NCBI GenBank assembly: GCA_025594325.1
Contig: JANHCV010000014.1
Coordinates: 992,001-1,056,000 of the forward strand
Source: Blastocladiella emersonii ATCC 22665
Lineage: Eukaryota; Fungi; Blastocladiomycota
Direction of reading: 5' to 3'
Length of the DNA stretch: 64,000 nt
The position numbers and the translations under genes are program-made. This document shows, one piece after another, positions 6,871-60,392 of this stretch. The notes under the pieces were generated by a model. The model made no database searches, was not told the origin of the DNA, and saw only the letters and a list, made by a program, of their open reading frames with translations. Numbering within the stretch: position 1 is the stretch's first letter; each line of letters begins with the position of its first letter.

Positions 6871-7150
6871 GACGCGAGCGGCGAGTTCCAGCGATCCGCT
6901 CACGAAGTCGCCCGCGCCCACTGGAACGATGATCAGCTAGCTCACCCGGACCTCAGTGTATTTCCTGTCGAGGCGGCCACACGCAGAGAGCTGCCGAAAC
7001 TGAGAGAGGACGGAGCTGCGAGACGTGTTGGGAAATCAGCTGACTCACCACACGATCAATCAGGCCGGGCCACGCCAGGGAGCCAAGTCGACGCAACCCT
7101 TCGCGCTCGGCCTCGCGCTCCCCTCTCTCTCCGCAAACCGCCTCACTACC

Positions 7151-22406: not shown

Positions 22407-22556
22407 GTTTCGAGTGCAGGGGAGCGTGAGAATTCGCTCGACGCGTCACGAGTTCCCATCCGGCCAACCTCGCGTGACCGCGTGAGGTGCGGCGCAACGC
22501 GTCTCAGTCAAGTTGTAAAAGAGCATATATTTTCAGAATACTCTCAATAGCGTCGG

Positions 22557-26222: not shown

Positions 26223-26223
26223 A

Positions 26224-26976: not shown

Positions 26977-27252
26977 TGCGGACGGTCGAGTGTCTGCAGT
27001 GGGGGAGGAGAGACGAGAGGCGGGCAAGGGAAACGGCTGGGCAGGACACGGCGCCACAACCCCCGCGACCACGTGCTATCGGGTGATAAATCGACGCGTC
27101 TCATGTCTTGCGTCGAGCACTTGCTCCGAGTCTAACTCAAACCAACGGCCAAGAAAGCTTCGAAAAACCCAATCTTCTTACAGGAGATCGGATTGGTATT
27201 TTTCAAACAGAACAAGACACGAACTCCATTCTTAGAAGCAGGCATTGAAGAC

Positions 27253-36308: not shown

Positions 36309-36382
36309 ATACGATGTATTTCTTTCTTTACTGCAGTTATTCGCCGATTTTCACGTCGAGGAAATGAGTTCCACTAGTTTAC

Positions 36383-37369: not shown

Positions 37370-37746
37370 TTACTCGTGTGCATGGCGTGGTCGCGGAGGA
37401 GTGTGATTTTTTCACATTCGATGGCTGCGGTCGAAGCAGGCCGTTCCTGCAGCTCCGACTTTTCATGCCCGCAGGGGTGATCAAGGTAGCACTCCTGTCT
37501 CGGACTTTGCTCAGCCAAAGTCTTTCCCTCGCGGTGAATGCGTTCGTCTACACAAATCGCTCGAGTTTCTTTGAACGGAAGTGAGCAGCACACAGCCGAC
37601 GCTGCGCGAAAGGAAACGGAGCGCGAGGGCGTTGCGGTGACGCGACTGACTGACGTGTCAGGTGATCAGTGAGGCGCTCCTCATTTCAGGTTCGCTCGTC
37701 CGCCTTGTTCGCCGCTCCCTCAGAGGACACTACCACGGCGGAAACC

Positions 37747-44330: not shown

Positions 44331-44407
44331 ATGTATACTTGGGGACATGATGCAACGGGCGGCCAGCCCCCGCGCACCGCGGCCGGCGGGAGCGACCGTT
44401 GGGAAGT
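44331..44407 (+). pseudogene. 5' end of host gene X, interrupted by the PLV
   Basis: AAGCAA-ATG at 44331, MYTWGHDATGGQPPRTAAGGSDRWE; continues in frame at 59586 after removing the PLV and one TSD. Confidence 0.7.
44403..44407. repeat. Left 5-bp target-site duplication GAAGT
   Basis: GAAGT immediately precedes TG at 44408; identical to 59581-59585. Confidence 0.92.
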
Positions 44408-44433
44408 TGTCGTATCCCTTAAGGGATACGACA
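44408..44433. other. Perfect 26-bp terminal palindrome TGTCGTATCCCTTAAGGGATACGACA
   Basis: Self-complementary; the right-end copy at 59555-59580 has one mismatch. Confidence 0.95.
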
Positions 44434-45463
44434 TGGGCTGACCTACTGCCACTCGGGCTGACCAATTGCTTACCCCGAGCGGTCGGCGGCAGTCACTCGG
44501 GGTAACCACGTGAGACCCAGTTGCTTACCCCGGGTGGTTAATAATATGTTGGATTCAAATGTCGTGTTCCCTTAGGGAACACGACACGCGGACGGAGGCC
44601 GAAGGCCGAAGCAGGTGGGCGGGAGGGTGGGTGGAAGGGAGGGGGCGAGTGGTTGAGGAGTGAGTCCCTGACCTGACCCCCGAGCCCGTCCCTAACCAAC
44701 CCCTTGGGCTGACCATCGCTTACCCCGAGCGGTCGGCGGCGGCCGGCGAGCGCAGCGAGACGAAGAGCAGCGCAGCTGCGGCTACCCACTGACAGAGTTC
44801 CCTGGTCTGGTCCCTGACCTGACCCCCGAGCCCGTCCCTGAGCCCGTCTGTCACCGCCCTTAGGGATTTCGCCACCCGGATCGGAGGCTGAAGGCCGAAG
44901 CAGGTGGGCGTGGGGGAGGGGGGAGGGGGGAGCAGCGATCACATGCCCCAGACGCGCAACGCAACGCGACCACAGAGTCACTCTACAAGCCGGCCCACGA
45001 CTTGGTCGGCGACTTGGTCGCGGCAATAGGCCCTTGAAGGCTCTCGGAATAATTCCACGAGAGGTCGGCGGTCAGTCCAAGAACGCGAGCAGCGACCCAG
45101 GTCAGCGACCAGCCCCTGACGGCTCTCGATGGCCGCCCCGAACTGGACCGGGTTTGAGCTCACTGGACCGGGTTCAAAGACAACCCGGTCCATGAAATTC
45201 GCTTGGGGTAAGCCATGGACTGGGTTGACCGGGTTGACCGGGTTGTTTTAAAGTAACAGTGTAGTGAAAAGGGGGGGAGGGACCGCTCCAGTGCCACTCT
45301 TCCCCCCCTTTCAAATCCCTAAAGGTCAATCGACCCCTCAACCCGGTCCACCCGGTCCATGGCTTACCCCGAACGAATTTCAATCAACTTGGTCCATTGA
45401 ACCCGGTCCATGGCTTACGGCGAACGGTTCAAAGGGCGGGCAACCCGGTCCAGGCTGCCGTGA
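44408..45463. repeat. Left TIR (1,056 bp)
   Basis: Reverse complement of 58524-59580; the mirrored ORF calls have identical offsets from the ends. Confidence 0.95.
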
Positions 45464-45607
45464 CCCGGTCCATGGCTTACGGCGAGCTGTTCAAAAGTGG
45501 TAGGGGCCCTGGTCGGGTCCACGATGCCGTAGTGTGTCCCGTTGCTACGTCATGCCAAGTGCGTTGAATGCGTTTGTCAATTTAAACTTTGTTGGACTAC
45601 TGTAACT

Positions 45608-45760
45608 ATGCGAGGCTGTATCAAAGAGATCGTCCCCCTGCCCAAGCCGCCATGCGATCACTATGATGCTCCCAGCTGGGTCCATGACAATGAGCTGCTG
45701 TGGGTCCAAGTCGTGTACCCATGCTGTGGGCACAAGTACACATACCGGCGGGTAGTCTGA
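45608..45760 (+). CDS. PLV small Cys/His-rich protein (50 aa)
   Basis: ctgtaactATG start context shared with other PLV genes; C..CDH..CCGH. Confidence 0.45.
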   Translation: MRGCIKEIVPLPKPPCDHYDAPSWVHDNELLWVQVVYPCCGHKYTYRRVV

Positions 45761-45810
45761 GAGCGACCAGTAAAGGCTTCAAGGTAGCTAACCAAGTTAA
45801 CTTGAAGGAT

Positions 45811-45966
45811 CTATTCAAAGCAGACAGTGTACACAACCTTGACACCTGGCAGGGCCACGTTGCGGATGGCTGTGTAGTTGGCTGTTGTCTGGGGGCCCGG
45901 ACGGCCAGTCCAAGGGATGCTCGTGGAAGGTGCGCGGGGCGTTGATGCAGTAGAGCCAGTATTCAT
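45811..45966 (-). CDS. PLV small ORF (51 aa), not in the supplied track
   Basis: MNTGSTASTPRAPSTSIPWTGRPGPQ..KVVYTVCFE*; agtaa motif upstream. Confidence 0.3.
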   Translation of the reverse strand: MNTGSTASTPRAPSTSIPWTGRPGPQTTANYTAIRNVALPGVKVVYTVCFE

Positions 45967-46020
45967 TGTCCTGTGTCTTACTATGCCTTCGCAGAAAGAA
46001 TTTAAAGCACATGTCGTTGC

Positions 46021-46122
46021 TTACTCTACGGCGCGGAATACTTTGCTTGTGTACCCAACAATGGCCAGGTTGGCTACAAGGATCAGGGCGTTGGTGGCAA
46101 CAAGGAGCGTCTCGAGGATCAT
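46021..46122 (-). CDS. PLV 33-aa single-TM micropeptide, not in the supplied track
   Basis: ctgtaaacATG; MILETLLVATNALILVANLAIVGYTSKVFRAVE*. Confidence 0.5.
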   Translation of the reverse strand: MILETLLVATNALILVANLAIVGYTSKVFRAVE

Positions 46123-46153
46123 GTTTACAGTAGAACAACAATTAAAGTCAACG

Positions 46154-46897
46154 TCAGATGAACGCAAGCTCGACGTAGAAGGGTTGGCCAAGAAAGTCGA
46201 CAGAGCGCAGGTTCTTGTCTACCACGTCAATGTCAATACAGTCAATCTGCTGGGCCTGTCCCTGCGCGTCAAAGCGAAAGTAGTCGCCCATGTGTGGTCG
46301 ATGCTCGAACCAGCTGCCAAAGGGTTGCGTGACGTGGATGCTACAAAGTACGCCGTTGTCTTGTGGGTACGCCAAGAACATGTTGTCCGCGAGCCGGGTG
46401 CCAAGGTTGCGCAAGTAGACGTGAAGCAGGTTGATGGGCGAGATGTTGACCAGCGCCGACCCGTACTGGACCTTGCTGTAGCCATACGCTCCAACAAAGC
46501 CCATGTGGACGTTCAGCAACGCCGTCCCTGTTCCAATTGTAAAGTCAACCGTGTCGTTGGCCAGGCGCATCTTCTGGGTAGTCGAGTCGACCTGGACGTC
46601 CCAGGAGCCCTGCCAGAGGTACGACGACGGCGCGTTGTTGAGCAGGCTCTTGAGCGTGGCCGTGAACGTCTTGACTGTGTAGTTGCCGTCAGGGACAGTG
46701 ATGGTACCCGGGAACGTCAGCGCGCCACGGCTCTGGGTCAGGTACACTTTGTTGGCCTTGGAGTTGACCGTGTGCCAGCTGTTGCAGAGGTACGCCGAGT
46801 TGACCTTGACGCCGCGCACGGACAGGGGTCGTGGCAGGTACAGGATGCCATTCTTGAGGTCGCGGCTGCAGATGGTCAGCGTCTTGTACTCGGACAT
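46154..46897 (-). CDS. Minor capsid protein (penton)
   Basis: TICSRD..LPRPL..VNSAYLCNSWHTVN..NKVY..ITVPDGNYT..LKSLLN follows the PLV penton N-terminal pattern; lies downstream of the MCP. Confidence 0.75.
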   Translation of the reverse strand: MSEYKTLTICSRDLKNGILYLPRPLSVRGVKVNSAYLCNSWHTVNSKANKVYLTQSRGALTFPGTITVPDGNYTVKTFTATLKSLLNNAPSSYLWQGSWDVQVDSTTQKMRLANDTVDFTIGTGTALLNVHMGFVGAYGYSKVQYGSALVNISPINLLHVYLRNLGTRLADNMFLAYPQDNGVLCSIHVTQPFGSWFEHRPHMGDYFRFDAQGQAQQIDCIDIDVVDKNLRSVDFLGQPFYVELAFI

Positions 46898-46915
46898 TTA
46901 AACAAAGACAACAAT

Positions 46916-47182
46916 TTATTGTACAGCTGTCCCCGTGTCGTCAGCGTCTGCCTCAAAGATCTCGCTCGTTGGTCGGTTGTACCAGGTGTGAATGTCTTGG
47001 GCGAGGTCGGCGCCCTTGGACACCATCTGCGCAATGGAGCTCACGGCGGGGTTGTGCGACCGCTCAAAGAACTTGGACACGGTCTTGACGCCTTTGAGGA
47101 CGGTCGGCATGTGTTTGTTGACAAAGGACCCGACCTGGCCGAGCACATTGCTAAAGTTGGTCCAGAGGTTACGGAAGATCAT
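46916..47182 (-). CDS. 88-aa protein with an N-terminal amphipathic helix
   Basis: Hydrophobic residues at positions 2,3,6,7,10,13,14,17,20,21 (IFRNLWTNFSNVLGQVGSFV); lies between MCP and penton. Confidence 0.6.
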   Translation of the reverse strand: MIFRNLWTNFSNVLGQVGSFVNKHMPTVLKGVKTVSKFFERSHNPAVSSIAQMVSKGADLAQDIHTWYNRPTSEIFEADADDTGTAVQ

Positions 47183-47224
47183 GGCGGGGTTTAACTCTAC
47201 GCAAGAAAAGAAAGGACAGGGCTG

Positions 47225-48445
47225 TTACTTGTAGATGTTGATCTCGCCGGTTGGCAGGAACTCGTAGACCACGTCGATGCCAATGAAGGCGTCCACGCGC
47301 TGGTTCGGGGCCACGCTTGAAGTCAGGATCACCTGCATGTCCACGGCCGGGCTCTTGCAAGACTTGTCGCCGCTGACCACGGTGCGACTCGACTCGAGGT
47401 CACGGCCAACGACAAAGGTACCCTTGGCCGGCGCGTTGAACTTGTCAACTGTGAGGCCAGCGCCAATGACGTGGCCATGGAAGGCATTGGTCAGCTCAAC
47501 GAACGCCTCGGACGCGTAGTTGTCACAGCGGATGGGTCGCTGAGGGAAGAGTCGGCCGGCCACGCTGAACTGGTACGATGTAATGGTCTTGGCACAAAGG
47601 AACGAGTCCTTGGCATTGTCGTTGAGCACGGCATTGTTGCGGAACAACAGCAGGATGTCTTTCTGTGAGGCCGAGCGGTCCGAGATGTTGAGCGTCGAGT
47701 TGGGCACCGAGTAGTTCAGGAAGTGGTGGTTGTAGGTCGTGCCAAAGAGCTTGAGGCCCTGCTTCTTGAAGGCCGCGTCCATGACCGCGATCTGCTGGTC
47801 GTTGAGCTTGATCAGGTCCAAGACAATGCAGACGTCCTTGACTGTGTAGCCCGGGATGGCATTGTTCTTGACCACGCAGGCGTCACTGCCAGGTGCAAGG
47901 GTGAACTCGACGCGGATGCCGCCCGTGTACTTCATTGGGAGGTGCTTCTGGTTTGCCAGCAGGGCCGACTTGATGGGCAGCATGTACCGGTGCAGCCCGG
48001 ACGAGACAGCGAACTTGTCCGCGCCGGACGCAAAGTAGCCCTGTGCCACGCCGAGACACAAGTCCTTGAGGTACTGGGGGACCGTCACGTCGGCCTCGAT
48101 GCGCTGACGCAGGTTGTAGTACAGGAGCTCTTCGAGTAGGGCACCGGACGCGCTGTAGATGCGGACACGGTCAATGACGCTGAAGATACCATCGCAGAAA
48201 GCAACGTTGGCGTCCGTGGTCTTGGCCGAGAACTGCAGGAAAGTACAGTGCGTGTCCATCATGTCGTCGCGCGGCGGGAGCAGGACGCTGATGCTGTTGC
48301 CAGGAGCAAACTCGGGGCCGCCCTGAGCCGTGAACTGGACGGTCTGGCGCTTGGCATAGACGGACTCCTTGGGCAGGTTGAACAACATCTCGGGAGGGAG
48401 AGTCTTGGACAGGACCTGTGAGAACTGGGCGTTGGTACTGGACAT
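47225..48445 (-). CDS. Major capsid protein (double jelly-roll, PLV type), 406 aa
   Basis: FAPGNSISVLLP..DTHCTFLQF..GIFSVIDRVRIYS..LEELLYYNL; YQFSVAGRLFPQRP; FVVGRDLE..VSG. Confidence 0.8.
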   Translation of the reverse strand: MSSTNAQFSQVLSKTLPPEMLFNLPKESVYAKRQTVQFTAQGGPEFAPGNSISVLLPPRDDMMDTHCTFLQFSAKTTDANVAFCDGIFSVIDRVRIYSASGALLEELLYYNLRQRIEADVTVPQYLKDLCLGVAQGYFASGADKFAVSSGLHRYMLPIKSALLANQKHLPMKYTGGIRVEFTLAPGSDACVVKNNAIPGYTVKDVCIVLDLIKLNDQQIAVMDAAFKKQGLKLFGTTYNHHFLNYSVPNSTLNISDRSASQKDILLLFRNNAVLNDNAKDSFLCAKTITSYQFSVAGRLFPQRPIRCDNYASEAFVELTNAFHGHVIGAGLTVDKFNAPAKGTFVVGRDLESSRTVVSGDKSCKSPAVDMQVILTSSVAPNQRVDAFIGIDVVYEFLPTGEINIYK

Positions 48446-48484
48446 GGTTTAGTTTAGGACTCGGCAACAAAAAAAGTCAAGGGT

Positions 48485-49282
48485 CTACTGCTTCACAATC
48501 CACTCGCTGAAGCTGTCTACGAGCCGGTACTTGGGCGGGTTCTGGTTGTTGACGCCCAGGAAGCGTCGCTTCGTGTTGCCAGTACGCGTGTCAAAGAGCT
48601 GTTCAATGATGGCCTCAAACTCCTTGAGGTCGAACTGCGACCCAATCTCCTTGTGCAGCGTCTGGACCTCGGTCTTGTCATAGATTGGGTAGACGACGCT
48701 GTAGCTGCAATTGATGCGCAGAGTCTTGGGCAGGGCACACCACCGCTGGACGCCAATGATGCAGCTGATCTTCAAGTGCCACGAGTTGCACAGAAAGTTG
48801 GTCAGCGTTCTGTGGCTCAGCAGCTTGAGCCCAAGCACGTTGTCAATGATCAGCAGCTGGTCCTGGAGCGCCTTCTTGCCAGACTCTTTGAATGTCTTGG
48901 TCAGGTCCTGGCGCATCTTGAGCAGGGTCGGGATGAACTGCTTGGGGTCCGTGACAATGCACCCTGGCTTGATCTTGAGCCGGTCCGGGTCGCGCTCCTG
49001 GGGGTCCAGCACGTTGCGCTCCTTCTTGGGCGGTTACAGGATTGGTTGACTGGCAATGTACTCGTACTTGTCGTTGGCGTGGAACGTCGGGTTAAAGACC
49101 CAGACGTTGTCGAACTGGCCCTTGTAAAAGTGCGGGAAGCAGACCATGTTCGCAATCAGCGTTGACTTGCCCTGACCCTTGGCACCAATGACGTTCATGG
49201 TGAACGGGTGCTTGGGGATTGGCAGCGGCTCGCCGTTGTCATTGCGCGTAAAGCCGTTGTCAATGGCAACAATGTTGTACAT
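48485..49282 (-). pseudogene. A32/FtsK-type packaging ATPase with an in-frame TAA at 49034-49036
   Basis: Walker A GAKGQGKS; Walker B region LLIIDN; NSWH..ISCIIGVQ..LPKTLRIN. The two track ORFs are in the same frame on either side of the stop. Confidence 0.88.
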
Positions 49283-49308
49283 TTAAAGACTGCCAACAAA
49301 AAAGGGCG

Positions 49309-51024
49309 TCAGTCCCAGCCGAGGTCAAAGACAATGCCGCTGCGCTTTGGGGTCTTGCGGACCTGCTTGACAGGCCGCTCAGGGATCTTCTGGTGACGCT
49401 GGATCTTGGGCGCTGTCAGCCCGCTACCCGCTGCCCGCTTGTCTGTGAACAGCTTCGCGTCGGTCGGCTTCTTGTAGCCCAGTTGCTTGAGGATCTGTTC
49501 AAGGAGCATGTCGGTCTTCTTAGAACTACCGCCAGAATTGTTTTGCGCGGCCAGCTCCCTGATCATGGCCTCGAGGCCGCTTGTGTCGGCAGGTTGGACA
49601 ATGACTTGGGGTGCAGGGATCGTGTCCAGCTTGGACCCAAGGTCTTGGAGCGTCTTGGTCATGGCCTCGTTGCTCTGGGTCTGCCCTTGGATCGCGCCCT
49701 GGACGCCGCTTGCAAGCTGGTTCATGAGCACCTGCTGGTTGCTGAGCGCAGAGGACATGCCCGTGGCAATCTCAGACACAAGCGCGCGGTTGCCAGCGTC
49801 AATCTGGCGGACAAAGTCGTTGCGTTTGGCTCGGAGCGTGTCCACGATCCCAGACGCGAGGTTGGCAAATGCGTCCATGGCCAGTCCCTGAGCGGCCACC
49901 GACTGCTTGATGAGCGCCTGGTACGCCTGGTACTGCATGACCTGGGACCCGGCAAACTGCGAGGCAATGAGCTTGAGCGCGGCCATGACGTTCGGGTCAT
50001 TGTTGTACTGGACCAGGATTTGCTGTCGCATGTCCACGTTCTGCTCGTAGTAGTTGTTCTCGTACTGGGTGATGAACTGCCGCATGTCAACGTTCTGCGT
50101 GTTCTGCTGCGTGTAGCTGTTGTACACGAACTGGTTAAACTGTTGAAAGTTCTGGACAACGTCAACCTCCATGTCGTCCGTGGTTGTCAGCGCCCGCTCA
50201 GGGTTGTAGACCTGCAAGTCCTTGGAGCCCTCGATCATGCGTGCCTCGTCCATGGCTGGGTGGACGTGACCCTCATTGTACACGCCTTGCCACTGTGCCA
50301 CGTCCGGGCCGTAGCTTGGTGGCATGACCACAAGGTCGTGGGTGCCGTCGTCAAGCCTTGGGGGCGGGTTGTTGCCGCCGTCATTGTCATTCTGGATCAG
50401 GTACTGGCCGGGGATCATGGCGCCGTACTTGTCAATGTCTTGACCAACATAGTCGCCGGCCTCGACCGGGTACTGCTCGGGCATGACTGGCCAGACGGGC
50501 ACGGGGAGCAAGTGGTCCGGTACAGCGTCCTTGTCAATGACGTCCAGGGCTTGTGAGATCTCTTCTGCCAGCTCGTCGCGTTCCTCTTCGCTGCTGCCCC
50601 TGTCGATGTCTGTGGCCGACTTGGGGGCCTCTGGTCTGGGGCTTGCTGCTGGTGGAGCAACTGGGACTCGAGTGACCTTGCCCGTTGCCTGGTGCTCTTC
50701 CCACGCTTTAAGCGTGTCTTGGACGTGCTCCTGGAGGTCCTTGACCTCGTACCCAGTGACGCCGTCCTGGTGCCTGAGGTAGAACAGCGAGTTGCCTCGT
50801 TTGCGGCCAAAGTTGTTGGCATAGCTCTCGGGCGTCACCTTGTAGTCAAAGGCAAGGATGTAAGGCACCCAGACGTCGAGGAGCTCTTTGGCATTGGGGA
50901 ACGTGTACTTGCGGCCGTCAATGGTTGCCTTGATCTTCTGCCCTGCAAGGCGCTCAGCCGTGATGCGCCCGCCGGTTGCCTTGGTCACTCTTGCAAGTAG
51001 ATCTGGTACTGTTCTTTGGCCCAT
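49309..51024 (-). CDS. PLV hypothetical protein (571 aa from the likely ATG at 51024) with a Q/N-rich segment and helical C-half
   Basis: cagtaaccatcATG start context; two QNVDMRQ repeats. Confidence 0.65.
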   Translation of the reverse strand: MGQRTVPDLLARVTKATGGRITAERLAGQKIKATIDGRKYTFPNAKELLDVWVPYILAFDYKVTPESYANNFGRKRGNSLFYLRHQDGVTGYEVKDLQEHVQDTLKAWEEHQATGKVTRVPVAPPAASPRPEAPKSATDIDRGSSEEERDELAEEISQALDVIDKDAVPDHLLPVPVWPVMPEQYPVEAGDYVGQDIDKYGAMIPGQYLIQNDNDGGNNPPPRLDDGTHDLVVMPPSYGPDVAQWQGVYNEGHVHPAMDEARMIEGSKDLQVYNPERALTTTDDMEVDVVQNFQQFNQFVYNSYTQQNTQNVDMRQFITQYENNYYEQNVDMRQQILVQYNNDPNVMAALKLIASQFAGSQVMQYQAYQALIKQSVAAQGLAMDAFANLASGIVDTLRAKRNDFVRQIDAGNRALVSEIATGMSSALSNQQVLMNQLASGVQGAIQGQTQSNEAMTKTLQDLGSKLDTIPAPQVIVQPADTSGLEAMIRELAAQNNSGGSSKKTDMLLEQILKQLGYKKPTDAKLFTDKRAAGSGLTAPKIQRHQKIPERPVKQVRKTPKRSGIVFDLGWD

Positions 51025-51136
51025 GATGGTTACTGTATGGACCAAAAATAAAACGTCCCCATGTCGGTACCTTTTGCCCCGTGCATCTTGCACCATTGGG
51101 CGTACCTTTTTCCCCGTGGCAGGTGCCTTTTGTCCC

Positions 51137-51391
51137 TCAGACGGTGGTGCTATTTGCCCCCTGGTCCCGGCGCTTGGCGTTGAGTGCCTTGTAGATCCAG
51201 ATCTTGACCCGCTCTGCCCGCGCTGCCTCGTTGTCAACGTGCGTGTACCAGTTGGCCTTGCAGTCGCGCTTCCGTAGCCACTTGGCCTTGTCCTTGTCGC
51301 TCTTGTTGTACCAGCTGCTTGGAACGGGCATGGTCCCGGCGAGGTGCTCCCGCCACTTGTCCAGGCTCAGGTCATGGTCGCTGGAAATCAT
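51137..51391 (-). CDS. PLV basic hypothetical protein (84 aa)
   Basis: ATG with a cttaa motif upstream; K/W-rich. Confidence 0.5.
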   Translation of the reverse strand: MISSDHDLSLDKWREHLAGTMPVPSSWYNKSDKDKAKWLRKRDCKANWYTHVDNEAARAERVKIWIYKALNAKRRDQGANSTTV

Positions 51392-51411
51392 TCTGTTGCT
51401 TAAGGTTAAAC

Positions 51412-53355
51412 ATGGTCAAGAATATCTTTAACGTCTCAAGTACTGCGTCTCCGACCGTGTCTACCACGGGGGTCCCGGACGTGTCCAAGGCCTACGTTGA
51501 CGCGGCCATCAGTGCCGTGTACGCCACGGTCGGCGCACCTGTTGCTGGCCCTGGCGTGGCAGTCTCAGGGACCACTGTCTCGACCAAGGTCGACAACCAG
51601 ACCCTTGGCGTGGGCGCAGCTGGGCTCTATGTCAAGTCGGTTGGCACGGTACAGCTGCTCCCAGCCAGCGTCACGGCCAACAAGGTCGCCACGATTACAG
51701 CAGGGCAGGTCACAGGCAAGCTCGTCGATGCTCAGCTGGACACTGTGTCTGCGTCCAAGGTCGTGGGCGTGCTCAGTGCGTCCAACCTCCCAGCCGTCGG
51801 AACCTCGGTCCTGGCAGACGGCTCAGTGACAGATGCCAAGGTTGCGTCCGTGTCCGGGTCCAAGCTCGTGGCAGGCACAGTCGGGACCTCGGTCCTGGCA
51901 GACGGCTCAGTGACTGATGCCAAGGTCGCGTCCGTGTCTGGGTCCAAGCTTGTGGCAGGCACAGTCGGCACGGCGGCTCTCATTGACCTGGCAGTCACAG
52001 ATGCCAAGGTCGCGTCCGTGTCTGGGTCCAAGCTCGTTGCAGGGACTATTGGGACGGGAGCCCTGGCAGACGGTGCCGTATTGAACGCCAAACTGGCAGC
52101 TGGCATCGACGGGTCCAAGCTGGCAGCAGGCACGGTTGGCACCTCGGTCCTGGCAGACGCGGCCGTGACCAACGCCAAGCTGGCAACTGGCATTGACGGG
52201 GCCAAGCTCAACGTTGGGTCCATTGGATCTTCCCACCTGGCAGCAGGTGCAGTCACGGACGCCAAGGTTACAGACGTGTCAGCAGTCAAGCTCACTGGGA
52301 TCCTTGACCCTGCCCGCATTGCAGACGGGACCCTGACCAACGCCAAGCTGGCATCCGGCATTGACTCAGCCAAGCTCGCAGGGACCATTGACCTGGCACA
52401 ACTCCCCGACGTCTCGGCCAAGGTCACAGCGGTGAGCGCAGCCTCGGTCGCTGGCACGCTCCCCCAGTCCACCCTTGGGCTTGGCGCTGCCTTTGCCTTT
52501 GCAAGTACGACGGACAGTTTGACATCAAGCACTGGAGCAGTCACCATTGCTGGTGGTCTTGGAGTTGGCAAGCAACTGACTGTGCCCAACGTCCTGGTCC
52601 AGAATGCCACAAGCGCAAACCTTGTCTTTGACTTGGCTGCCAATACATTGACGTACGTCGACTTTAAGCAGGCAGGCGTACTGCGAAGCAACCTGGCATG
52701 CACAGCGGCGGGTAACATTGAGATTGCGTCTGCAACCACGGGTGGGGTCTCCCTTGTGGCAGGTGGCGGCAACGTGGTTGTGGGCTCGGCGACGCTTGGC
52801 ACAGAAAAGCTCCGCGTCAATGGCACTGGTCGCTTCACAGGGCAGCTCACCCTTGACCTCACTCCAGTGGCAGGCACCGACGCGGCAAACAAGGCGTACG
52901 TTGACTTGCAGTCTGGCATGACCTGGTATGTCGCTCAGGCCAAGCACCGCTCTACAAACGGAGTGACCACGGGCAGCAAGATCATTGGCGGCACAGCATT
53001 GACGGGCCCGGCCACCTTTGCGTTCCAGTCCACGGCAGGCGCGTTCACGTCTGTGATCAATGGATGTGTCAAACCCCCTGTCAGTGGCTACTACCTCGTC
53101 CATGCAAAGGGCTACTACGCAAACGGCGCGCTCCCTGGAGCCCACACTGTGAACTTTGCGCTGTACAATATGACGGACATGATTGCAGTGTCGCTTGTCA
53201 CTGGGTGCCGCGCTGAAGGCAACGTCCAGTTCCTTCAGTTCTCGAGCATTGAGTACCTTGACGCGGCCAAGAGCTACTCTTTCATCTGGATCCCATTGGT
53301 CGCAATTGCCAACAACTGCCAGGTCATCATTCAAAGCTACTGGACCCTGCTCTAA
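51412..53355 (+). CDS. Fibre/spike-like protein (647 aa) with tandem shaft repeats and a C1q/TNF-like head
   Basis: gttaaacATG; two KAYVD motifs; 28-aa GTSVLADGSVTDAKVASVSGSKLVAGTV repeats (84-bp DNA repeats at about 51799-52050); C-terminal PVSGYYLV. Confidence 0.7.
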   Translation: MVKNIFNVSSTASPTVSTTGVPDVSKAYVDAAISAVYATVGAPVAGPGVAVSGTTVSTKVDNQTLGVGAAGLYVKSVGTVQLLPASVTANKVATITAGQVTGKLVDAQLDTVSASKVVGVLSASNLPAVGTSVLADGSVTDAKVASVSGSKLVAGTVGTSVLADGSVTDAKVASVSGSKLVAGTVGTAALIDLAVTDAKVASVSGSKLVAGTIGTGALADGAVLNAKLAAGIDGSKLAAGTVGTSVLADAAVTNAKLATGIDGAKLNVGSIGSSHLAAGAVTDAKVTDVSAVKLTGILDPARIADGTLTNAKLASGIDSAKLAGTIDLAQLPDVSAKVTAVSAASVAGTLPQSTLGLGAAFAFASTTDSLTSSTGAVTIAGGLGVGKQLTVPNVLVQNATSANLVFDLAANTLTYVDFKQAGVLRSNLACTAAGNIEIASATTGGVSLVAGGGNVVVGSATLGTEKLRVNGTGRFTGQLTLDLTPVAGTDAANKAYVDLQSGMTWYVAQAKHRSTNGVTTGSKIIGGTALTGPATFAFQSTAGAFTSVINGCVKPPVSGYYLVHAKGYYANGALPGAHTVNFALYNMTDMIAVSLVTGCRAEGNVQFLQFSSIEYLDAAKSYSFIWIPLVAIANNCQVIIQSYWTLL

Positions 53356-54464
53356 AGCCCAAGGTCCCACTTTTCTTGGACTTGGACTGGGACGCGCCTG
53401 ACCCGGGTCGAGGGCTCCCTTGGCGTGACTGGGGTATGCGCAACAGGGAGCCTTGGAAGACCTGGACCTACGCGCTGCCTTGTTGGCGGGTCCTGGGTCG
53501 CTGTGACTGGCTGGACGTCGCTGCGTGGATAGAAGCCCTTGAGGCCTTGGACCTTGTAGCTTGGATTGCTCACGCCTGACCCCTTGCGCACGACCTGGAC
53601 CTGGCTCACAGTTGTCAACCAGACCGGCTTCCCCTTGGCCTCCATGGCAGTCTTGTACGGCTCGCGGACTTGGACCTGGGTCCCTACCTTCAACAATGCG
53701 CTCAGAGGGTCGCCCTCAGGCTTGCCCTTGGCAGCTCGGATCTCCTTGAGCTCTTGCTTGGCCGTTTCGCGGGGCATGTCATGGAACGCGTTGGGTGCCT
53801 TGCTTGTGGCCCTCGACTTGCTGCTGTTGATCACAGATTCAATGGTCTCGAGGTGCTTGGGCCAGTTGTTGTTGCCCGGGATGGACAGCCACGGTGTGAG
53901 CATCCGGCGGATGGTCCCGTTCATACGCTCAACGACACCTTGACCGTATGGCACTCCTGCCTTACCCTTGATGTGCTTGGCCTTGGTCCCGGCCTCTATG
54001 CCAAAGAACTCGGTCCCATTGTCTGTCTGGATCGTGGCAGGTGCAAGGCTGTGCTTGGCGACCACGCTGGACCATGCTTCCCGCGTCTTGTCCTTGGTCT
54101 TGATGGGTTGGAGGTAGACGCGGCGGCTTGCCAGGTCGACACACGTGAGAATGTAACGGAAGCCCTTGTACGTACCGTTTTCGCCCATGTCAATGAGGTC
54201 GAGCTGAAAGTTGCGGCCAGGACTTGTTGAGTTGATGCTTCGAATGTCTCGGCGCTTCTGAGGTGCGCGTTTGTACTGCTGCCACACAGACTGTTCACCG
54301 AGCCATCTCTCAAGCTGGGCGCGGTAGATGTGCTTCCCTGTGTGCTCTTGGTCAACAATGTCAAAGAGACGCCGGACCCCAACCCCAACATGGCCACGTT
54401 TGTAGTACAAGTCTGTCAGGAATGCTTGCTGTGCGTCTGTGAGCGGCTCTTTGTGGGCATACAT
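53352..54464 (-). CDS. rve (retroviral-like, Polinton-type) DDE integrase, 370 aa
   Basis: QLDLIDM, YILTCVDLASR, QTDNGTEF and GVVERMNGTIR motifs, plus an SH3-like tail KVGTQVQV..YKVQGLKGFY. Confidence 0.93.
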   Translation of the reverse strand: MYAHKEPLTDAQQAFLTDLYYKRGHVGVGVRRLFDIVDQEHTGKHIYRAQLERWLGEQSVWQQYKRAPQKRRDIRSINSTSPGRNFQLDLIDMGENGTYKGFRYILTCVDLASRRVYLQPIKTKDKTREAWSSVVAKHSLAPATIQTDNGTEFFGIEAGTKAKHIKGKAGVPYGQGVVERMNGTIRRMLTPWLSIPGNNNWPKHLETIESVINSSKSRATSKAPNAFHDMPRETAKQELKEIRAAKGKPEGDPLSALLKVGTQVQVREPYKTAMEAKGKPVWLTTVSQVQVVRKGSGVSNPSYKVQGLKGFYPRSDVQPVTATQDPPTRQRVGPGLPRLPVAHTPVTPREPSTRVRRVPVQVQEKWDLGL

Positions 54465-54492
54465 TGTATTAACAAAGGCGGAGACAAAAGGA

Positions 54493-55643
54493 TTACTGAG
54501 GCGTCATGTAGTAGGTCAAGGCAACAGGGACGCTGTGACCCATCTTGTGTGCGCAGTCAGCAATAGCTTGCTGTGCGGCAAAGTTCTCACTGGTCAAGAT
54601 ACGGCGGATCACTGCCACGCCGCCATCCTCAAAGCCAACTGTCTCTGCAGCCTGGTGAATTGACTTGCACCAGGTGTTGCTAACCCTCTTGCAGAGCATG
54701 GTGTCCTTGAGCTCCTTGCGGGTGTAGTTGTTGAAGACAAAGTCATGGCCTTTGGCGAGACGCTGGGCAATGATACGCTTGAGAGCGGTGGCGACCTTGG
54801 GCTCACTAACTGTGTGCGAGAAGTTGTAGCCACAGCCCTCTGTCTTGACAATGACATCGCCGGCCAGAATCTGGGTCTCTGGGTTGTAGTACGGGTACCC
54901 AGTGATTGGCTTTGTGGTCAGGAACGCAGGGTCGCTGCGCACTGCACTCACAACTTGGAGGTACAGACGCAGAAGCCCCGTGCCCGAGTCCCAGCCCTTT
55001 GCATCAACAATAGCAGTGCGAATGGCGTCACAGCTCGGGAGCGCACCAGACTCGAGTTCCTTGCGCATGTCGCGGAAGTTGGCAGCGTCCTGCTTCTTGG
55101 CCTCTGTGTACTTGGCCCTGAGTTCAGGCTGACCATTCCAGGTGCAGTACTTGGCCAGGGCCTTGAGCGTCTCAACCTGCAGCCCCTGCTTGCCCTTGGA
55201 CGCGCGGTACGCTGCCACAGCTTTGGACACGGCATCAACGTCTTCAATGTCCATGCCCGACTTGGCAAAGGCACAGAGCACACGGGATGTCTTGGCCTTG
55301 TCCGTGTCGCTCAGCTCAACCAGTTCCCCGTGCTTGTTCTGAACACGCGCGTTGACGCACGCCGCAATGGATTCCTTGGTCATCTGCGCGTACTTGACCT
55401 GGGGGTCAGTGTCCATGGGCTCGCCAGACTTGTCGATGGGGGTGTGATTGGGACAGTGATTGCAGTTACGTGACACTGCAGCCAGCGCGGTGAGGCTGGT
55501 CTCAACTCCCTTGAGCCGCTTGTCAAAGGATGCCAGCATGCCAGCAGCGGCTTGATACCATCGAGCACTTGGTGCACTACATTGGCGGCAAAGTGCTGAG
55601 CAAGGGCAATGGCGACCTGGGAGGCAAGAGAGTCAAGCGCCAT
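54493..55643 (-). pseudogene. Tyrosine recombinase-family protein (380 aa restored), frameshifted by an 8-bp duplication
   Basis: VSAVRSD (R), IVKT (K), VAVIRR (R, no His), MGHSVPVALTYY (H..Y). TGCCAGCA is duplicated at 55531-55546. Confidence 0.7.
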
Positions 55644-55764
55644 GGTTTACTGACTGTCAACAAAAAGGCTCCATGGGCTCAAGTGCGTTTGAACGCAACG
55701 TTCTTTTTTCTGGGTAGCTGGGCCTGGGTCAGGGTCAGGGTGGTGGCAAGTCATGGACCGTGGG

Positions 55765-56030
55765 AGGGCCCAGGTCACGGTTTGAGAGGTTTGTGACCTC
55801 GGACCCTACTGGCTCCCAAGTCGGGAGCATGGGGGGTCCGTGACTTTGCCCTCAGTCGCTGCCCAGGTCACGGTTCAAGGATCGTGACCTGAGACGCGAT
55901 TGGCTCCCAAGTTGGGAGCATGGGGGAGGTCGTGTCTGGGTCAGGGTCAGGTCACGCAAGGGCAGCTGGGTCAGGGTCAGGGTCAGGTCACGCAAGGGCA
56001 GCTGGGTCAGGGTCAGGGTCAGGTCACGGC
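55765..56030. promoter_or_regulatory. Hairpin- and repeat-rich intergenic control region between the recombinase and helicase genes
   Basis: Twice-repeated AGGTCAC..GTGACCT and GCTCCCAAGTYGGGAGC palindromes, followed by (GGGTCA)n arrays. Confidence 0.55.
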
Positions 56031-56150
56031 CAGCAGCAATAGCGATAATCGCGGCACTTCAAGTACACGGCCCTGCCCCTGCTCCCAGACTGCGTTTTTC
56101 CGCATCAAAGTACAATGCTTTTTTCTGTGCTCAACAGTAACTACTCGGCC

Positions 56151-58457
56151 ATGCCCCAGCTAACCAAGATCGCCAAGACCCTCGACTACACCAAGTCCAT
56201 GTTCACGGACTCGCGCCAGGTTGTGCTGCGTGAGTACTACAACAAGGACGTGCTTGATGGGCTCTGCGCGCGGTACTCGGGCATCAACGCTGAGGTCAAG
56301 AAGAAGCTCAAGGCCTACGCGGCGCTGGCCAAGGCGAGCTACAGCGGCGGCAAGGAGACTGTGTACTTGTTCACCACGCGGTCGACCTTGGTTGAGAAGA
56401 AGTTTGGCCGACTCTACGCCACGTCGCCGTCGCTCCAGAGCTTCAGCAAGGACCTCATCCGCAGCCCGCTGGCCAAGGGCGTGCTCCAGGACCTTGACAT
56501 GAAGGGCGCGGCGCCGTCGATCCTCCGCGGCGTCTGCCAGCACTACAACCTTGGCCACGGCGTCTTTGACCAGTACCTCGCCAACCGCACGGCCGCGCTG
56601 GCCAAGTGGGGGCTCGGGGATAAGCAGGAGTTCCTCTCAATGCTGTTCAACGAGTTCGTTGACCCAGACGCGGTGCACCCTGAGCTTGTGGCCTTCCACC
56701 ACATGCTGTACGGCTCGCTGTACAAGCTGATTGAGAAGGACTTTCCGCACGTTGTCAAGGCGTCCAAGCCTTGCGTGGACAAGACCATGAACAAGGGTTT
56801 GGTGCTCTCCAACCTGTTCCAGGCCGTCGAGTCAATCCTCCTGATGCGCGCCATTGACTTTGCCCGCGCCAACAACCTTGTGCCAAGCGTGCTTGTGTTT
56901 GACGGGTTCATGGTCAAGAAGGACGACTGCGTCAACGCCGAGCTGCTTGCCAAGATGTCCGCCAACACGCTCAAGTACACGGGCTTTGAGGTGGAGTGGG
57001 ACGAGAAGGAGATCACGGTGCCTGAGTCCAAGGACAAGGGCAAGCTCCCCGACTTTTGCAAGGACCCGGCCGCGTTTGTTGCCATGCAGCTTGAGCGTGA
57101 CCCGCACTACGACGACGACTGGATTGGCAAGGTTGTCACCCACTACCTCAGCCACAAGGTGGACGAGGACAAGCAGTCGTGGAAGGAGGTTGTGATCAAG
57201 TACGTGGGCAAATTTGTCCGCAAGGACCTGGTCGGCGAGATGTACTTTCGCCGCACTGTGACCAACGCCTGGGATACCAACGGTGAGGACAACGTGAAGC
57301 AGGCGTGCAGCACGGGGGCCATCAAGTACGCTCCACAGGTCAAGGCGCTCATCTTTGACATGCACAAACCGCAGTGGGGCCCGTCTCACCAGAACGGCCT
57401 CGTGGTCGACTACTTTAACGCGTTCTACGGGTTTGCGGCCACGGACCTTGGCTGCAACATTGAGCCCGAGTTGATTGTCATGTACCTCAAGTACATTTGC
57501 GACGTGGTCTGCAGCGGCAACGAGGAAGAGTACGCGTATGTCCTCAAGTGGATCCAGTGCCTGCTCACCACGGGCAAGGCCAATGGCGTGATGCTGCTGC
57601 TGACGGGTCTTGAGGGCGTGGGCAAGGGCAAGTTCAACCACCTTCTGGCCCAGTACATTATCGGCCGCAAGAACATGGTGTCCATCAGCAACGGGCCGAC
57701 GTGGCTCAAGGGTGAGTTCAACTCAGAGATCGCCCACAAGATGCTTGTGCTGTTTGATGAGATGCCCTCCAGCAAGCCAGCCGAGCTCAAGAACGCGTTT
57801 GACAAGCTCAAGAGCATGGTCACCGAGGACAAGCTCATTGTCAACGAAAAGTACATGAAACGCAAGGAGGTCAAGAACGTCAACAACTTTATGATCGCGA
57901 CCAACAACTGTGACGTGCTGCCACTCACCAAGACTGGTCGCCGCGAGTTCGTCCTCAAGATGTCCAACATCAAGTGCCAGGACAAGAACTACTTTGGCGA
58001 GCTTGACGCGTTTGTCAAGGAGCACGCCAACGAGATCTTTACCTACATCCTCCGCCTCGACCTCTCGCACCTGACGCTGTCCAAGTTCCCGCGCAACCAG
58101 GCCCGCAACAACGCCATCATGGCGGCACTGGAGCCGGTTCCCGCGCTGGCCATGGACATCATGGAGTACGGCGGCTTCCCGCTCAACCTCCTGGACCACA
58201 CGCGCCAGGTCGAAGTTGTGCCAGAGCTTGAGGCAGACGCGTTCTACAAGTTTTACCGCAAGTACGCCAAGAAGCGCTTCCCTGGCCGCTCGTCCATGTC
58301 GCAGACCAAGTTCGGCGAGTACATCAAGCGCGAAGTCAACCCGGCCAACAAGCAGGAGCTCTTCGAGGTGACGCGTTGCACCGTGAATCGCCGCAAGCTT
58401 CGCATCTACAAGTACCGCGGGCCGTACACAGTTGAGCTGTCCAAAGACGAGATGTAA
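56151..58457 (+). CDS. PolA-like (TVpol) primase-polymerase fused to a D5-like SF3 helicase
   Basis: GRLY..SLQ, DLDMKGAAPSIL and VLVFDGFMV (family A motifs); GLEGVGKG, LVLFDE and FMIATN (SF3 motifs A/B/C). Alternative ATG at 56115. Confidence 0.85.
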   Translation: MPQLTKIAKTLDYTKSMFTDSRQVVLREYYNKDVLDGLCARYSGINAEVKKKLKAYAALAKASYSGGKETVYLFTTRSTLVEKKFGRLYATSPSLQSFSKDLIRSPLAKGVLQDLDMKGAAPSILRGVCQHYNLGHGVFDQYLANRTAALAKWGLGDKQEFLSMLFNEFVDPDAVHPELVAFHHMLYGSLYKLIEKDFPHVVKASKPCVDKTMNKGLVLSNLFQAVESILLMRAIDFARANNLVPSVLVFDGFMVKKDDCVNAELLAKMSANTLKYTGFEVEWDEKEITVPESKDKGKLPDFCKDPAAFVAMQLERDPHYDDDWIGKVVTHYLSHKVDEDKQSWKEVVIKYVGKFVRKDLVGEMYFRRTVTNAWDTNGEDNVKQACSTGAIKYAPQVKALIFDMHKPQWGPSHQNGLVVDYFNAFYGFAATDLGCNIEPELIVMYLKYICDVVCSGNEEEYAYVLKWIQCLLTTGKANGVMLLLTGLEGVGKGKFNHLLAQYIIGRKNMVSISNGPTWLKGEFNSEIAHKMLVLFDEMPSSKPAELKNAFDKLKSMVTEDKLIVNEKYMKRKEVKNVNNFMIATNNCDVLPLTKTGRREFVLKMSNIKCQDKNYFGELDAFVKEHANEIFTYILRLDLSHLTLSKFPRNQARNNAIMAALEPVPALAMDIMEYGGFPLNLLDHTRQVEVVPELEADAFYKFYRKYAKKRFPGRSSMSQTKFGEYIKREVNPANKQELFEVTRCTVNRRKLRIYKYRGPYTVELSKDEM

Positions 58458-58523
58458 CGAGTCCAGAGACTCCTTTGTGAATACAACTTTGTACCTTTTG
58501 TTTACTGTACTTGCAGCGACCGT

Positions 58524-59580
58524 TCACGGCAGCCTGGACCGGGTTGCCCGCCCTTTGAACCGTTCGCCGTAAGCCATGGACCGGGTTCAATGGACCAAGT
58601 CGATTGAAATTCGCTTGGGGTAAGCCATGGACCGGGTGGACCGGGTTGAGGGGGTCGATTGACCTTTAGGGATTTGAAAGGGGGGGAAGAGTGGCACTGG
58701 AGCGGTCCCTCCCCCCCTTTTCACTACACTGTTACTTTAAAACAACCCGGTCAACCCGGTCAACCCAGTCCATGGCTTACCCCAAGCGAATTTCATGGAC
58801 CGGGTTGTCTTTGAACCCGGTCCAGTGAGCTCAAACCCGGTCCAGTTCGGGGCGGCCATCGAGAGCCGTCAGGGGCTGGTCGCTGACCTGGGTCGCTGCT
58901 CGCGTTCTTGGACTGACCGCCGACCTCTCGTGGAATTATTCCGAGAGCCTTCAAGGGCCTATTGCCGCGACCAAGTCGCCGACCAAGTCGTGGGCCGGCT
59001 TGTAGAGTGACTCTGTGGTCGCGTTGCGTTGCGCGTCTGGGGCATGTGATCGCTGCTCCCCCCTCCCCCCTCCCCCACGCCCACCTGCTTCGGCCTTCAG
59101 CCTCCGATCCGGGTGGCGAAATCCCTAAGGGCGGTGACAGACGGGCTCAGGGACGGGCTCGGGGGTCAGGTCAGGGACCAGACCAGGGAACTCTGTCAGT
59201 GGGTAGCCGCAGCTGCGCTGCTCTTCGTCTCGCTGCGCTCGCCGGCCGCCGCCGACCGCTCGGGGTAAGCGATGGTCAGCCCAAGGGGTTGGTTAGGGAC
59301 GGGCTCGGGGGTCAGGTCAGGGACTCACTCCTCAACCACTCGCCCCCTCCCTTCCACCCACCCTCCCGCCCACCTGCTTCGGCCTTCGGCCTCCGTCCGC
59401 GTGTTGTGTTCCCTAAGGGAACACGACATTTGAATCCAACATATTATTAACCACCCGGGGTAAGCAACTGGGTCTCACGTGGTTACCCCGAGTGACTGCC
59501 GCCGACCGCTCGGGGTAAGCAATTGGTCAGCCCGAGTGGCAGTGGGTCAGCCCATGTCATATCCCTTAAGGGATACGACA
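58524..59580. repeat. Right TIR (1,057 bp)
   Basis: Inverse of 44408-45463 with one extra G and a few substitutions. Confidence 0.95.
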
Positions 59581-60392
59581 GAAGTGACCAAGGAAGGCCT
59601 GTGCCAGTTCGAGGACAACTTTGACGTCCACCCAGACCTGTGGAGCTTCGTGAACCGCATCCTCAAGTCCTACACCAAGGAGAGCAAGTGGGTCCATGCC
59701 TTTGCCCCGCTTGACCACGTCAACAAACGCGTGTGGGCAAACCTCATGGACGAGCCGACCGTGGCTGAGCTCGTTGCCACCCTGACAGAGTCAGCTGCTC
59801 AGGGCAATGGGGACGCAGAGATTATGCTTCGTGGGGGCCGTTTGCGCACTATGCGTTTGCCAAGGCTCTCGGCGCGTACCTCAAGACCGGCGTCATGCCT
59901 GGAAACCCTGAGCTCCTTCAGGCCAACGTCACGGTGCTTGCCAACATCCTGATCGCGCGCATTGTCACGGTCCTCCGCCGCCACAAACTCCTCCGCGGCG
60001 CCACCCAGCTCGCCGCCGCGCGCGCCAAGAGCAAGGTCGTGGACGCCGTCGTGCATGTCGTTGCGCAGCGCGCGTGCGCCGTGGGCGAGTTTGGCAACGA
60101 GCCCGTTAACGGAATCTGGGGCCTGTTCATGAACCCAATCCCGATGATGTACGAGGTCCCGCACCGCCTGCTGACACACGCCTTGCGCCGGATCAAGCTG
60201 CTGGCCGCATTCATTGACCTTGTCCTCAAGCGCATGGTCGCCGTGTTTGACCGCGAGGCCGCCAAATCGGAGACTGGCGTGCCGATCTTTGAACTAGCCA
60301 AGGATGTCATGTGGCCCATCTTCTACGACGTCGTCCTGTGCAAGATTCTTGCGATTGCAAACAAGGTTGTTGCAGCCCGTGGTCAAGTCTGA
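59581..60392 (+). pseudogene. Right TSD (59581-59585) plus 3' part of host gene X, with a 1-nt frameshift in the G run at 59833-59837
   Basis: EVTKEGLCQFEDNFDVHPDLWSFVNRILK..FAPLDHVNKRVWANLMDE aligns with the paralogue at 63457. Confidence 0.7.

Follow-up and report, generated by a model that had tools for sequence, protein, structure and literature searches.

A multi-copy Polinton-like virus family integrated in the blastoclad fungus Blastocladiella emersonii, with an rve integrase next to a tyrosine-recombinase-like gene

We find that a 15,173-bp element at positions 44408–59580 of a 64,000-nucleotide stretch of DNA from Blastocladiella emersonii ATCC 22665 (assembly GCA_025594325.1, contig JANHCV010000014.1, positions 992,001 to 1,056,000 of the forward strand; hereafter the window) is a real integration of a new lineage of Polinton-like virus (PLV) in a blastoclad fungus, structurally complete with two of its genes broken. 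B. emersonii is a long-used model zoosporic fungus. An earlier note, made by a model that saw only the letters and a list of reading frames, had called the element a complete PLV that carries both an rve integrase and a tyrosine recombinase, and the coordinates it gave are exact. The explanation we favor, at a probability of about 80%, is that the element is an integrated copy of a multi-copy PLV family, that it was inserted by its rve integrase, and that its recombinase acts elsewhere.

The integrated element and its sibling copies

The element is bounded by terminal inverted repeats (TIRs), whose arms were located at 44408–45337/58651–59580 and 45334–45463/58524–58653. When realigned, the two arms proved to be 99.15% identical over 1,063 nt, with seven mismatches and two gaps; the left TIR (about 1,056–1,063 nt) occupies 44408–45470 and the right TIR, which ends in CA, occupies 58517–59580. 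The tips read TGTCG at the start and CGACA at the end, and immediately outside them stand the two copies of a target-site duplication (TSD), GAAGT, at 44403–44407 and 59581–59585, a 5-bp match that would arise at random with a probability of about 1/1024. Realignment of the TIRs and inspection of the flanks thus uphold the description in the earlier note of TIRs of about 1.06 kb, a GAAGT duplication and TG..CA termini. The G+C content of the element is 58.6%, that of the 5 kb to its left 65.2% and that of the remaining window 61.5%. No tRNA gene was found inside the element, and no second copy of any of its proteins was found elsewhere in the window.

Identification of the element as a PLV depends first on its major capsid protein (MCP), a 406-aa product encoded on the minus strand at 47225–48445. 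A sensitive search with this protein recovered 454 cluster representatives at E<=0.001, and an AlphaFold model computed with an alignment of 63 relatives had a pLDDT of 91 and a pTM of 0.87. When this model was compared with the PDB by Foldseek it matched Vp54 of PBCV-1 (E 1e-17) together with the capsid proteins of SGIV (grouper iridovirus) and faustovirus, vaccinia D13 and Sputnik, at E-values from 1e-17 to 1e-11; the capsid proteins of nucleocytoplasmic large DNA viruses ranked above that of Sputnik, the sole solved virophage MCP (rank 50). The best TM score against viral MCP models in BFVD was 0.77, the sequence profile by itself matched PBCV-1 MCPv1 (8h2i) with an E-value of 0.0016, and the closest relatives outside Blastocladiella are unnamed metagenome proteins of no more than 38% identity. 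As judged from the predicted structure, the 47225–48445 product is a double jelly-roll capsid protein, a point on which the earlier note had staked its reading beforehand.

Next to the MCP gene, at 48485–49282 on the minus strand, lies a gene for an A32-type packaging ATPase, which matched Pfam Pox_A32 at 2.8e-7, above the gathering score, when its two pieces were searched separately. The two pieces are the result of one premature in-frame stop in the window copy, which is otherwise colinear with its siblings at 95–97% identity; in six siblings the gene is an open frame of 265 codons and of equal length. None of the open reading frames (ORFs) larger than 300 aa, all of which were searched, matches a polymerase B family, and no maturation protease was found by family match among the ORFs searched, in agreement with the absences remarked on in the earlier note. 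The element therefore displays the features of a PLV, namely a double jelly-roll MCP, an A32 ATPase, no protease, a length of 15,173 bp and TIRs of 1.06 kb, and the capsid protein and ATPase bear out the view that it is an integrated PLV. The thirteen compact ORFs that had been counted in it reduce to about ten that are supported, although the gene set is indeed compact; similarly, the word complete holds for the structure of the element but not for its genes, given the stop in the ATPase gene and a frameshift in the recombinase gene described below.

The element is one member of a family. Its MCP matches seven proteins that are 83–96% identical to it, all of them listed as "hypothetical protein, Blastocladiella emersonii ATCC 22665", which confirms the zoosporic fungus that had been proposed as host. 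Ten loci (L001–L010) taken from GCA_025594325.1 represent eight sibling copies on six contigs of 1.07–2.02 Mb, so that the assembly holds at least eight further copies, 80–97% identical in DNA to the window copy and surrounded by different host genes. Both ends were seen in four copies, including that in the window. Three of these four have a 5-bp TSD, and all three sequences differ: GAAGT in the window copy (15,173 bp), GAAAT in L004 (5437–20770; 15,334 bp) and CAGCT in the copy formed by L005 and L009 (18,670 bp). This is the outcome of the check for sibling copies and TSD lengths that had been proposed for the element. Three different 5-bp duplications, and the lack of any sequence common to the flanks, fit a DDE integrase and not a site-specific recombinase. 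A target-site preference was considered and rejected, as the eight flanks seen give no consensus.

In the fourth copy with both ends, L002 (4650–20821), there is no direct repeat. Its flanks, L002:4553–4649 and L002:20822–20918, are perfect inverted repeats of each other over at least 97 nt, at which point the match runs into the limit of the retrieved sequence; this arrangement could have come about by outward copying from one repeat, by insertion in a host palindrome or by a fold-back error of assembly.

Comparison of the copies indicates that every gene tested has been under purifying selection, with dN/dS values of 0.12–0.57 at synonymous divergences (dS) of up to 0.8; the copies differ largely by synonymous changes. 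Relative to the siblings, dN/dS was 0.16–0.24 for the rve integrase, 0.12–0.53 for the MCP, 0.13–0.39 for the putative penton protein, 0.20–0.31 for the fiber-like protein, 0.21–0.41 for the large protein and 0.38–0.57 for the recombinase. Such low ratios at dS values of up to 0.8 imply that most of the divergence arose under selection for function, that is, while the elements were replicating. The TIRs are 100% identical within each of L002, L003 and L004, while the copies differ from one another by 3–20%, and all eight genes tested in copy L004, which has a 5-bp TSD, are free of stops. The window copy, with nine differing positions between its TIRs and two broken genes, looks somewhat older and slightly decayed.

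An rve integrase adjacent to a tyrosine-recombinase-like gene

The gene for the rve integrase (DDE, retrovirus type; 370 aa) is an open frame on the minus strand at 53352–54464. By itself the protein matched Pfam rve at 2.4e-6, its 28.2 bits lying below the gathering cut-off of 32.6; a profile built with four relatives matched the integrase cores of PFV, HTLV-2, MMTV and Ty3 at an E-value of 2.5e-11, and the triad D89, D148 and E179 is invariant. The profile match and the invariant triad establish the presence of the integrase, and the variable 5-bp duplications point to it as the integrating enzyme, both as the earlier note had supposed.

Relatives of the element occur on two metagenome contigs of 42–45% G+C, L011:1–11506 (ENA ERZ27299535) and L012:1–10678 (Logan ERR3281035), in which the gene order (fiber, small gene, large gene, ATPase, MCP, small gene, penton-like gene) equals that of the element. 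Each contig carries a related rve integrase. L012, the source of the closest MCP relative from a metagenome (36% identity), encodes an integrase that is 33% identical to that of the window (E 9e-46), which argues that the integrase belongs to the lineage and is no recent acquisition. Other searches for relatives were negative: a scan of IMG/VR with the replicase found none, DNA scans of JGI metagenomes with the rve and MCP alignments and of IMG/VR with the MCP alignment gave nothing that was confirmed, and the terminal palindrome described below was found in IMG/VR only in three unrelated AT-rich phage contigs.

The NCBI annotation includes the integrase gene at just one of the sibling loci retrieved, which is why a protein search returned no Blastocladiella homologue, and an exact look-up of the window protein in the protein collection found it not to be on record. 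In the same annotation (L002:18191–19219 and other siblings) the genes for the 88-aa and penton-like proteins described below are fused into one 303-aa product with an intron. Both this fusion and the missing integrase calls look like gene-model errors in an intronless, virus-type region.

The second recombinase gene lies at 54493–55643 on the minus strand, 28 nt upstream of the integrase gene and in the same orientation, in all nine copies. The window copy has suffered one frameshift in its N-terminal, non-catalytic part, leaving open a 348-aa ORF with the catalytic domain; all eight siblings give a single-frame match to a 375-aa form. Because the position and orientation are fixed in nine copies, and no reverse transcriptase was found near the gene, we regard it as native to the element and not as part of a nested one. 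A nested Crypton or retrotransposon as its source was likewise rejected, in view of the missing reverse transcriptase, the same position in every copy and the upstream motif that it shares with other genes of the element.

Sequence searches with the recombinase returned only Blastocladiella paralogues, and its assignment comes from predicted structure and motifs. Nearly all of the top 50 matches of its model in the PDB, as ranked by Foldseek, fall among the tyrosine recombinases, topoisomerase IB and the protelomerase TelA; the highest ranks go to Cre (E 2.5e-3, probability 1.0) and TelA (E 3.8e-3), and XerA, XerH and the Tn1549 and lambda integrases also appear. In seven copies of the protein that are 55–93% identical, R201, K232, R312/R313, H335 and Y344 are invariant. 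A tblastn search of 2.3 Gb of phage genomes gave a sole, not significant match (E 0.5), which fell in a gene annotated as a site-specific recombinase whose product is a clear Pfam Phage_integrase (1.4e-19). Alignment of the two with hhalign gave an E-value of 1.4e-4 over 100 columns, a flattering value in that the comparator had been chosen as the best database match, and the register placed R312, H335 and Y344 opposite the comparator's HxxR arginine, histidine and tyrosine. We conclude that the 54493–55643 product probably adopts a tyrosine-recombinase fold with a plausible active site. The second recombinase named in the earlier note is thus borne out at the level of fold and motif.

Both metagenome contigs break off within the gene that lies just upstream of rve. 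BLASTP found no similarity between this incomplete gene and the recombinase on either contig; that of L011 contains a GHS..Y stretch like the one in the recombinase, and an hhalign comparison, which covered only that stretch, was not significant (E 0.13).

Two further sets of features, which are new leads absent from the earlier note, may bear on what the recombinase does. The first is a set of palindromes at and near the tips. Each end of the element begins with a perfect palindrome of 26 bp that starts with TG (44408–44433 on the left, 59555–59580 on the right) and is predicted to be able to fold into an 11-bp hairpin (dG of -11 to -14.7 kcal/mol, z of -5.25). It is kept in all copies, and in L004 and L005 paired complementary changes on both arms preserve the symmetry. 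A related near-palindrome of 27 bp lies 152 nt inside the left end (44560–44586), with its right counterpart at 59402–59428; it is present at an equal distance in seven of the nine copies (window, L001, L002, L003, L006, L007 and L008). The second is a promoter-like motif, TTTTTGTTG, whose exact sequence occurs only three times in the 64-kb window, in each case on the coding strand and 12–20 nt upstream of a start: one before the MCP gene (48465–48473), one before the ATPase gene (49294–49302) and one, on the minus strand at 55658–55666, 15 nt upstream of the start of the full-length recombinase. All three positions are kept in L003, L004 and L007. Most of the other structural genes, and the integrase gene, have short T-rich tracts directly before the ATG, and intergenic gaps are just 18–42 nt.

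Replication module, remaining genes and neighborhood

Divergent from the recombinase gene is the gene for a 780-aa replication protein (56115–58457, plus strand), whose C-terminal part is a helicase of D5/SF3 type. The protein matched DUF5906 (4.8e-18; VapE-like) and the primase 6k9e in the PDB (1.2e-9), and its residues 456–754 matched "DNA primase" families of PHROGs at 2.5e-26. Residues 1–450 are well conserved between copies 55% identical (three copies compared). The defining feature of TV-Pol is a PolA-like palm that carries an arginine hairpin, two aspartates and RxxxK (PMC2579912), and candidates for these motifs can be discerned in the N-terminal part by eye only.

The 780-aa helicase-type replicase is found in the window copy, L003, L004 and L008. 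At the same position L001, L002 and L006 have an unrelated replication gene of about 950 aa (L001:5000–9900, L002:4650–9900 and L006:5023–9900), with a match to Herpes_ori_bp in L001 and L006. Between the window copy and L008, moreover, dS is 0.11 for the recombinase and 0.74 for the MCP, and this discordance, as read from the sequences, indicates recombination between lineages of the family. Together, the two replication modules and the discordant gene divergence indicate that the family is mosaic, which is the general rule among PLVs. The spacer that separates the recombinase gene from the replicase gene contains a 36-nt tandem repeat of 2.6 copies (55934–56028), and in L001 and L002 a stretch of about 160 nt, equivalent to window 55768–55926, occurs in three to six successive repeats; the spacer as a whole (55768–56028) may be a control or origin region.

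The remaining genes fill the space around the capsid module. Downstream of the MCP gene is the gene for a putative penton (minor capsid) protein of 247 aa (46154–46897, minus strand), named from its position and conservation, which is conserved in all copies (84–96%) and in L011 and L012 (37%, E 1e-45). Between the two lies a gene for a conserved 88-aa protein (46916–47182, minus strand; 90–100% identity in siblings and 46–52% in L011 and L012, E 1e-17 to 1e-19). A large protein, annotated at 571 aa in siblings, is encoded at 49309–51237 on the minus strand; its N-terminus is basic and its middle rich in Q and N, and its gene has the position of the genes for proteins of 497 and 632 aa in L011 and L012. 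It is followed by a small ORF of 84 aa (51137–51391, minus strand), which in siblings corresponds to an annotated gene of 63–83 aa. On the plus strand, at 51319–53355, is a gene for a fiber-like protein with tandem repeats of 28 aa (84 nt; 51796–52073) that matched Pfam Phage_Tail_Tip at 1.1e-8 and tail-fiber families of PHROGs; an endosialidase-chaperone domain occurs in the L011 protein encoded at the corresponding place.

ORFs flanking the insertion site had no family match. Farther away in the window, an inverted-repeat pair at 6168–6520 and 15999–16366, 77–79% identical and about 9.5 kb apart, may delimit a second mobile element of greater age. DUF4470 domains are encoded by ORFs at 7025–9049 and 19161–22406, and one such ORF also adjoins copy L004. 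Two stretches of lower G+C content (55–58%), at 17000–28000 and 34000–41000, contain long ORFs without family matches and may be other mobile DNA; a weak match to UvrD_C_2 was seen at 24343–25170.

Relation to known elements and the role of the second enzyme

The Blastocladiella family resembles described PLVs (Yutin 2015, PMC4642659; Bellas & Sommaruga 2021, PMC7805220; cryptophyte PLVs, PMC12220804) in its length of 15 kb, long TIRs, core of MCP and A32 ATPase with a putative penton, lack of a maturation protease and pPolB, helicase-fusion replication protein, TSDs within the 5–7 bp that accompany rve, numerous copies in a genome and a mosaic set of genes. An rve gene is typically missing from PLVs, some of which encode a tyrosine recombinase (PMC4642659); where PLVs do have rve, duplications of 5 bp have been recorded, and in a survey of 8,300 PLVs rve and a tyrosine recombinase occurred together only when the rve came from a nested retrotransposon (PMC12220804). 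In the Blastocladiella family, by contrast, the two are native, adjacent, without a reverse transcriptase and present in all copies. The family also differs from these PLVs in its host, a blastoclad fungus. The chytrid Spizellomyces has yielded one PLV (PMC7805220), other chytrids have given only ATPase signals (10.64898/2026.06.19.733378), and a large protist survey of integrated small DNA viruses excluded fungi (PMC10120064); our literature search found no paper that links Blastocladiella with Polintons. Strict Polintons or Mavericks share with the element an rve integrase, TIRs, a capsid module and a short TSD. Unlike them, it has neither pPolB nor an adenain-type protease, its MCP is of PLV type, and its TSD, in the three copies that have one, is 5 bp instead of 6 bp, so that it falls outside the strict definition of a Polinton.

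According to a recent preprint, pPolB is linked to DDE integrases, whereas replicases of the PolA or primase kind are linked to tyrosine recombinases (10.64898/2026.10.13.758929), a rule of pairing that the Blastocladiella family breaks. The earlier note had pointed to the coexistence of two different recombinases; both are present, but their combination is less new than the note implied, because the mid-GC EMALEs, endogenous mavirus-type virophages of Cafeteria burkhardae, all pair an rve integrase with a predicted tyrosine recombinase, and replace pPolB by a long primase/helicase (Hackl 2021, PMC8547959), and so set a precedent. The mid-GC EMALEs further resemble the family in having TIRs, TSDs mostly of 3–5 bp without site specificity and many recent copies (PMC8547959). 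They differ in that they have a virophage-type MCP, a maturation protease, MV14 and a link to CroV, whereas in the Blastocladiella element no protease was found and no helper is known.

The mechanism that we propose begins with the rve integrase, which would join the TG..CA tips of a linear genome to the chromosome with a 5-bp stagger. Staggered attack on the target is a property of retroviral integrases, Mavericks and mavirus. The family would then be spreading, or would have spread recently, as a virus rather than decaying in place. The tyrosine recombinase probably did not make the insertions seen, since they have no common core sequence, and may instead work on the palindromes at or near the tips, where it would process, resolve or release the genome ends. 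Sites of tyrosine recombinases are usually built as two inverted arms around a short center. In this respect, as in its predicted fold and its R..K..R..H..Y set, the system is like Cre/loxP, XerA and TelA; unlike them, the protein belongs to no sequence family and has its HxxR histidine replaced, and the candidate sites, which we know from their sequence, are fully symmetric and lie at tips inserted by another enzyme. Because the recombinase shares its promoter-like motif with the capsid and packaging genes, a late role in resolving or releasing ends is suggested. The two enzymes might thus operate in two directions, rve inserting the genome and the recombinase, expressed together with the capsid and packaging genes, releasing or resolving its ends at the sites at the tip and 152 nt inside it, whether by excision, by formation of a circle or by hairpin ends in the manner of a telomere resolvase; in this specific form the proposal is tentative and may well be wrong.

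Several observations weigh against one part or another of this account. The recombinase has no sequence match in Pfam, NCBIfam, PHROGs or the PDB, its model (from eight paralogues) reached a pLDDT of only 65, the comparator used in its alignment was selected as described above, and the HxxR histidine is not kept, the position being Ala or Gln. In the roughly 270 kb examined, neither a free nor a circular nor a hairpin-ended genome turned up, and no circle junction or solo palindrome did. Copy L002 lacks a TSD and has perfect inverted repeats as host flanks instead, and the copy formed by L001 and L010, which is truncated or rearranged, has no left TIR within 9 kb past its penton gene (L010:12921–22140). 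The putative penton protein has no Pfam or PDB match, alone or as a profile (the profile gave only a chance match against the PDB), so that what stands of the penton claimed in the earlier note is a conserved gene beside that for the MCP. The N-terminal 450 aa of the replicase, finally, had no match in Pfam (E<=10), in the PDB (alone or as a three-sequence profile) or in phage genomes (tblastn); of the TVpol-SF3 protein that had been claimed, the SF3 helicase half is supported by DUF5906, PHROG and 6k9e matches, and the TVpol label is not.

Alternatively, the recombinase could be a second integration enzyme that serves another target, such as the genome of a co-infecting giant virus, with rve used only for the fungal chromosome. 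The recombinases of virophages and PLVs have been read in this way (PMC8547959, PMC4642659), and such a role would suit a gene that every copy has kept under purifying selection, in an element whose tight gene spacing and short AT-rich motifs before start codons, within a genome of 58–65% GC, recall the organization of virophages. We nevertheless consider it unlikely: the window contains no giant-virus sequence, a paper on Mycodnaviridae does not mention Blastocladiella, no attachment-like site common with another genome was found, and symmetric sites are conserved nowhere but at the tips of the element itself. Likewise, no observation on the window or its siblings bears on the parasitism of a giant virus that the earlier note had put forward as a possibility.

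It is also possible, albeit doubtful, that the recombinase-like gene is a passenger or relic without present function, or encodes no recombinase at all, so that the element would be a plain rve-dependent PLV. That no family model recognizes the protein, that its structural model is of modest quality, that its dN/dS is the highest among the genes compared across all siblings, that it is frameshifted in the window copy and that no similarity to it is detectable in the gene that precedes rve on L011 and L012 would all be expected on this account. Retention of the gene at the same place in nine copies at synonymous divergences of up to 0.8, single-frame matches in all eight siblings, the invariance of five candidate catalytic residues, the conserved upstream motif and the derivation of nearly all top 50 fold matches from one superfamily argue otherwise.

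An origin of the element by contamination or chimeric assembly, instead of by chromosomal insertion, is very improbable: 1-kb repeats of near 100% identity can mislead assemblers, the flanks of L002 resemble a fold-back and the window proteins have no letter-for-letter match in the protein collection, yet perfect 5-bp duplications border the window copy and two siblings, the siblings lie inside contigs of 1.07–2.02 Mb amid differing host genes, and the window copy is flanked by ordinary high-GC sequence with the DUF4470 gene family also found beside L004.

The family is a second case, independent of the Cafeteria virophages, in which an rve integrase is kept together with a tyrosine recombinase and a replicase other than pPolB. 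If the proposed two-enzyme cycle is true, it would explain how an integrated PLV that has no protein-primed polymerase can recover genomes with defined ends, and the candidate sites for the second enzyme make the role of the recombinase approachable by descriptive data. Giant viruses have been reported in zoosporic fungi (PMC13533422), so that one may ask whether fungi, too, harbor virophage-like relationships. The presence of at least nine copies, with TIRs identical within copies, genes under purifying selection and at least one copy open in all genes tested, suggests that these viruses are active now, or were active recently, in a blastoclad.

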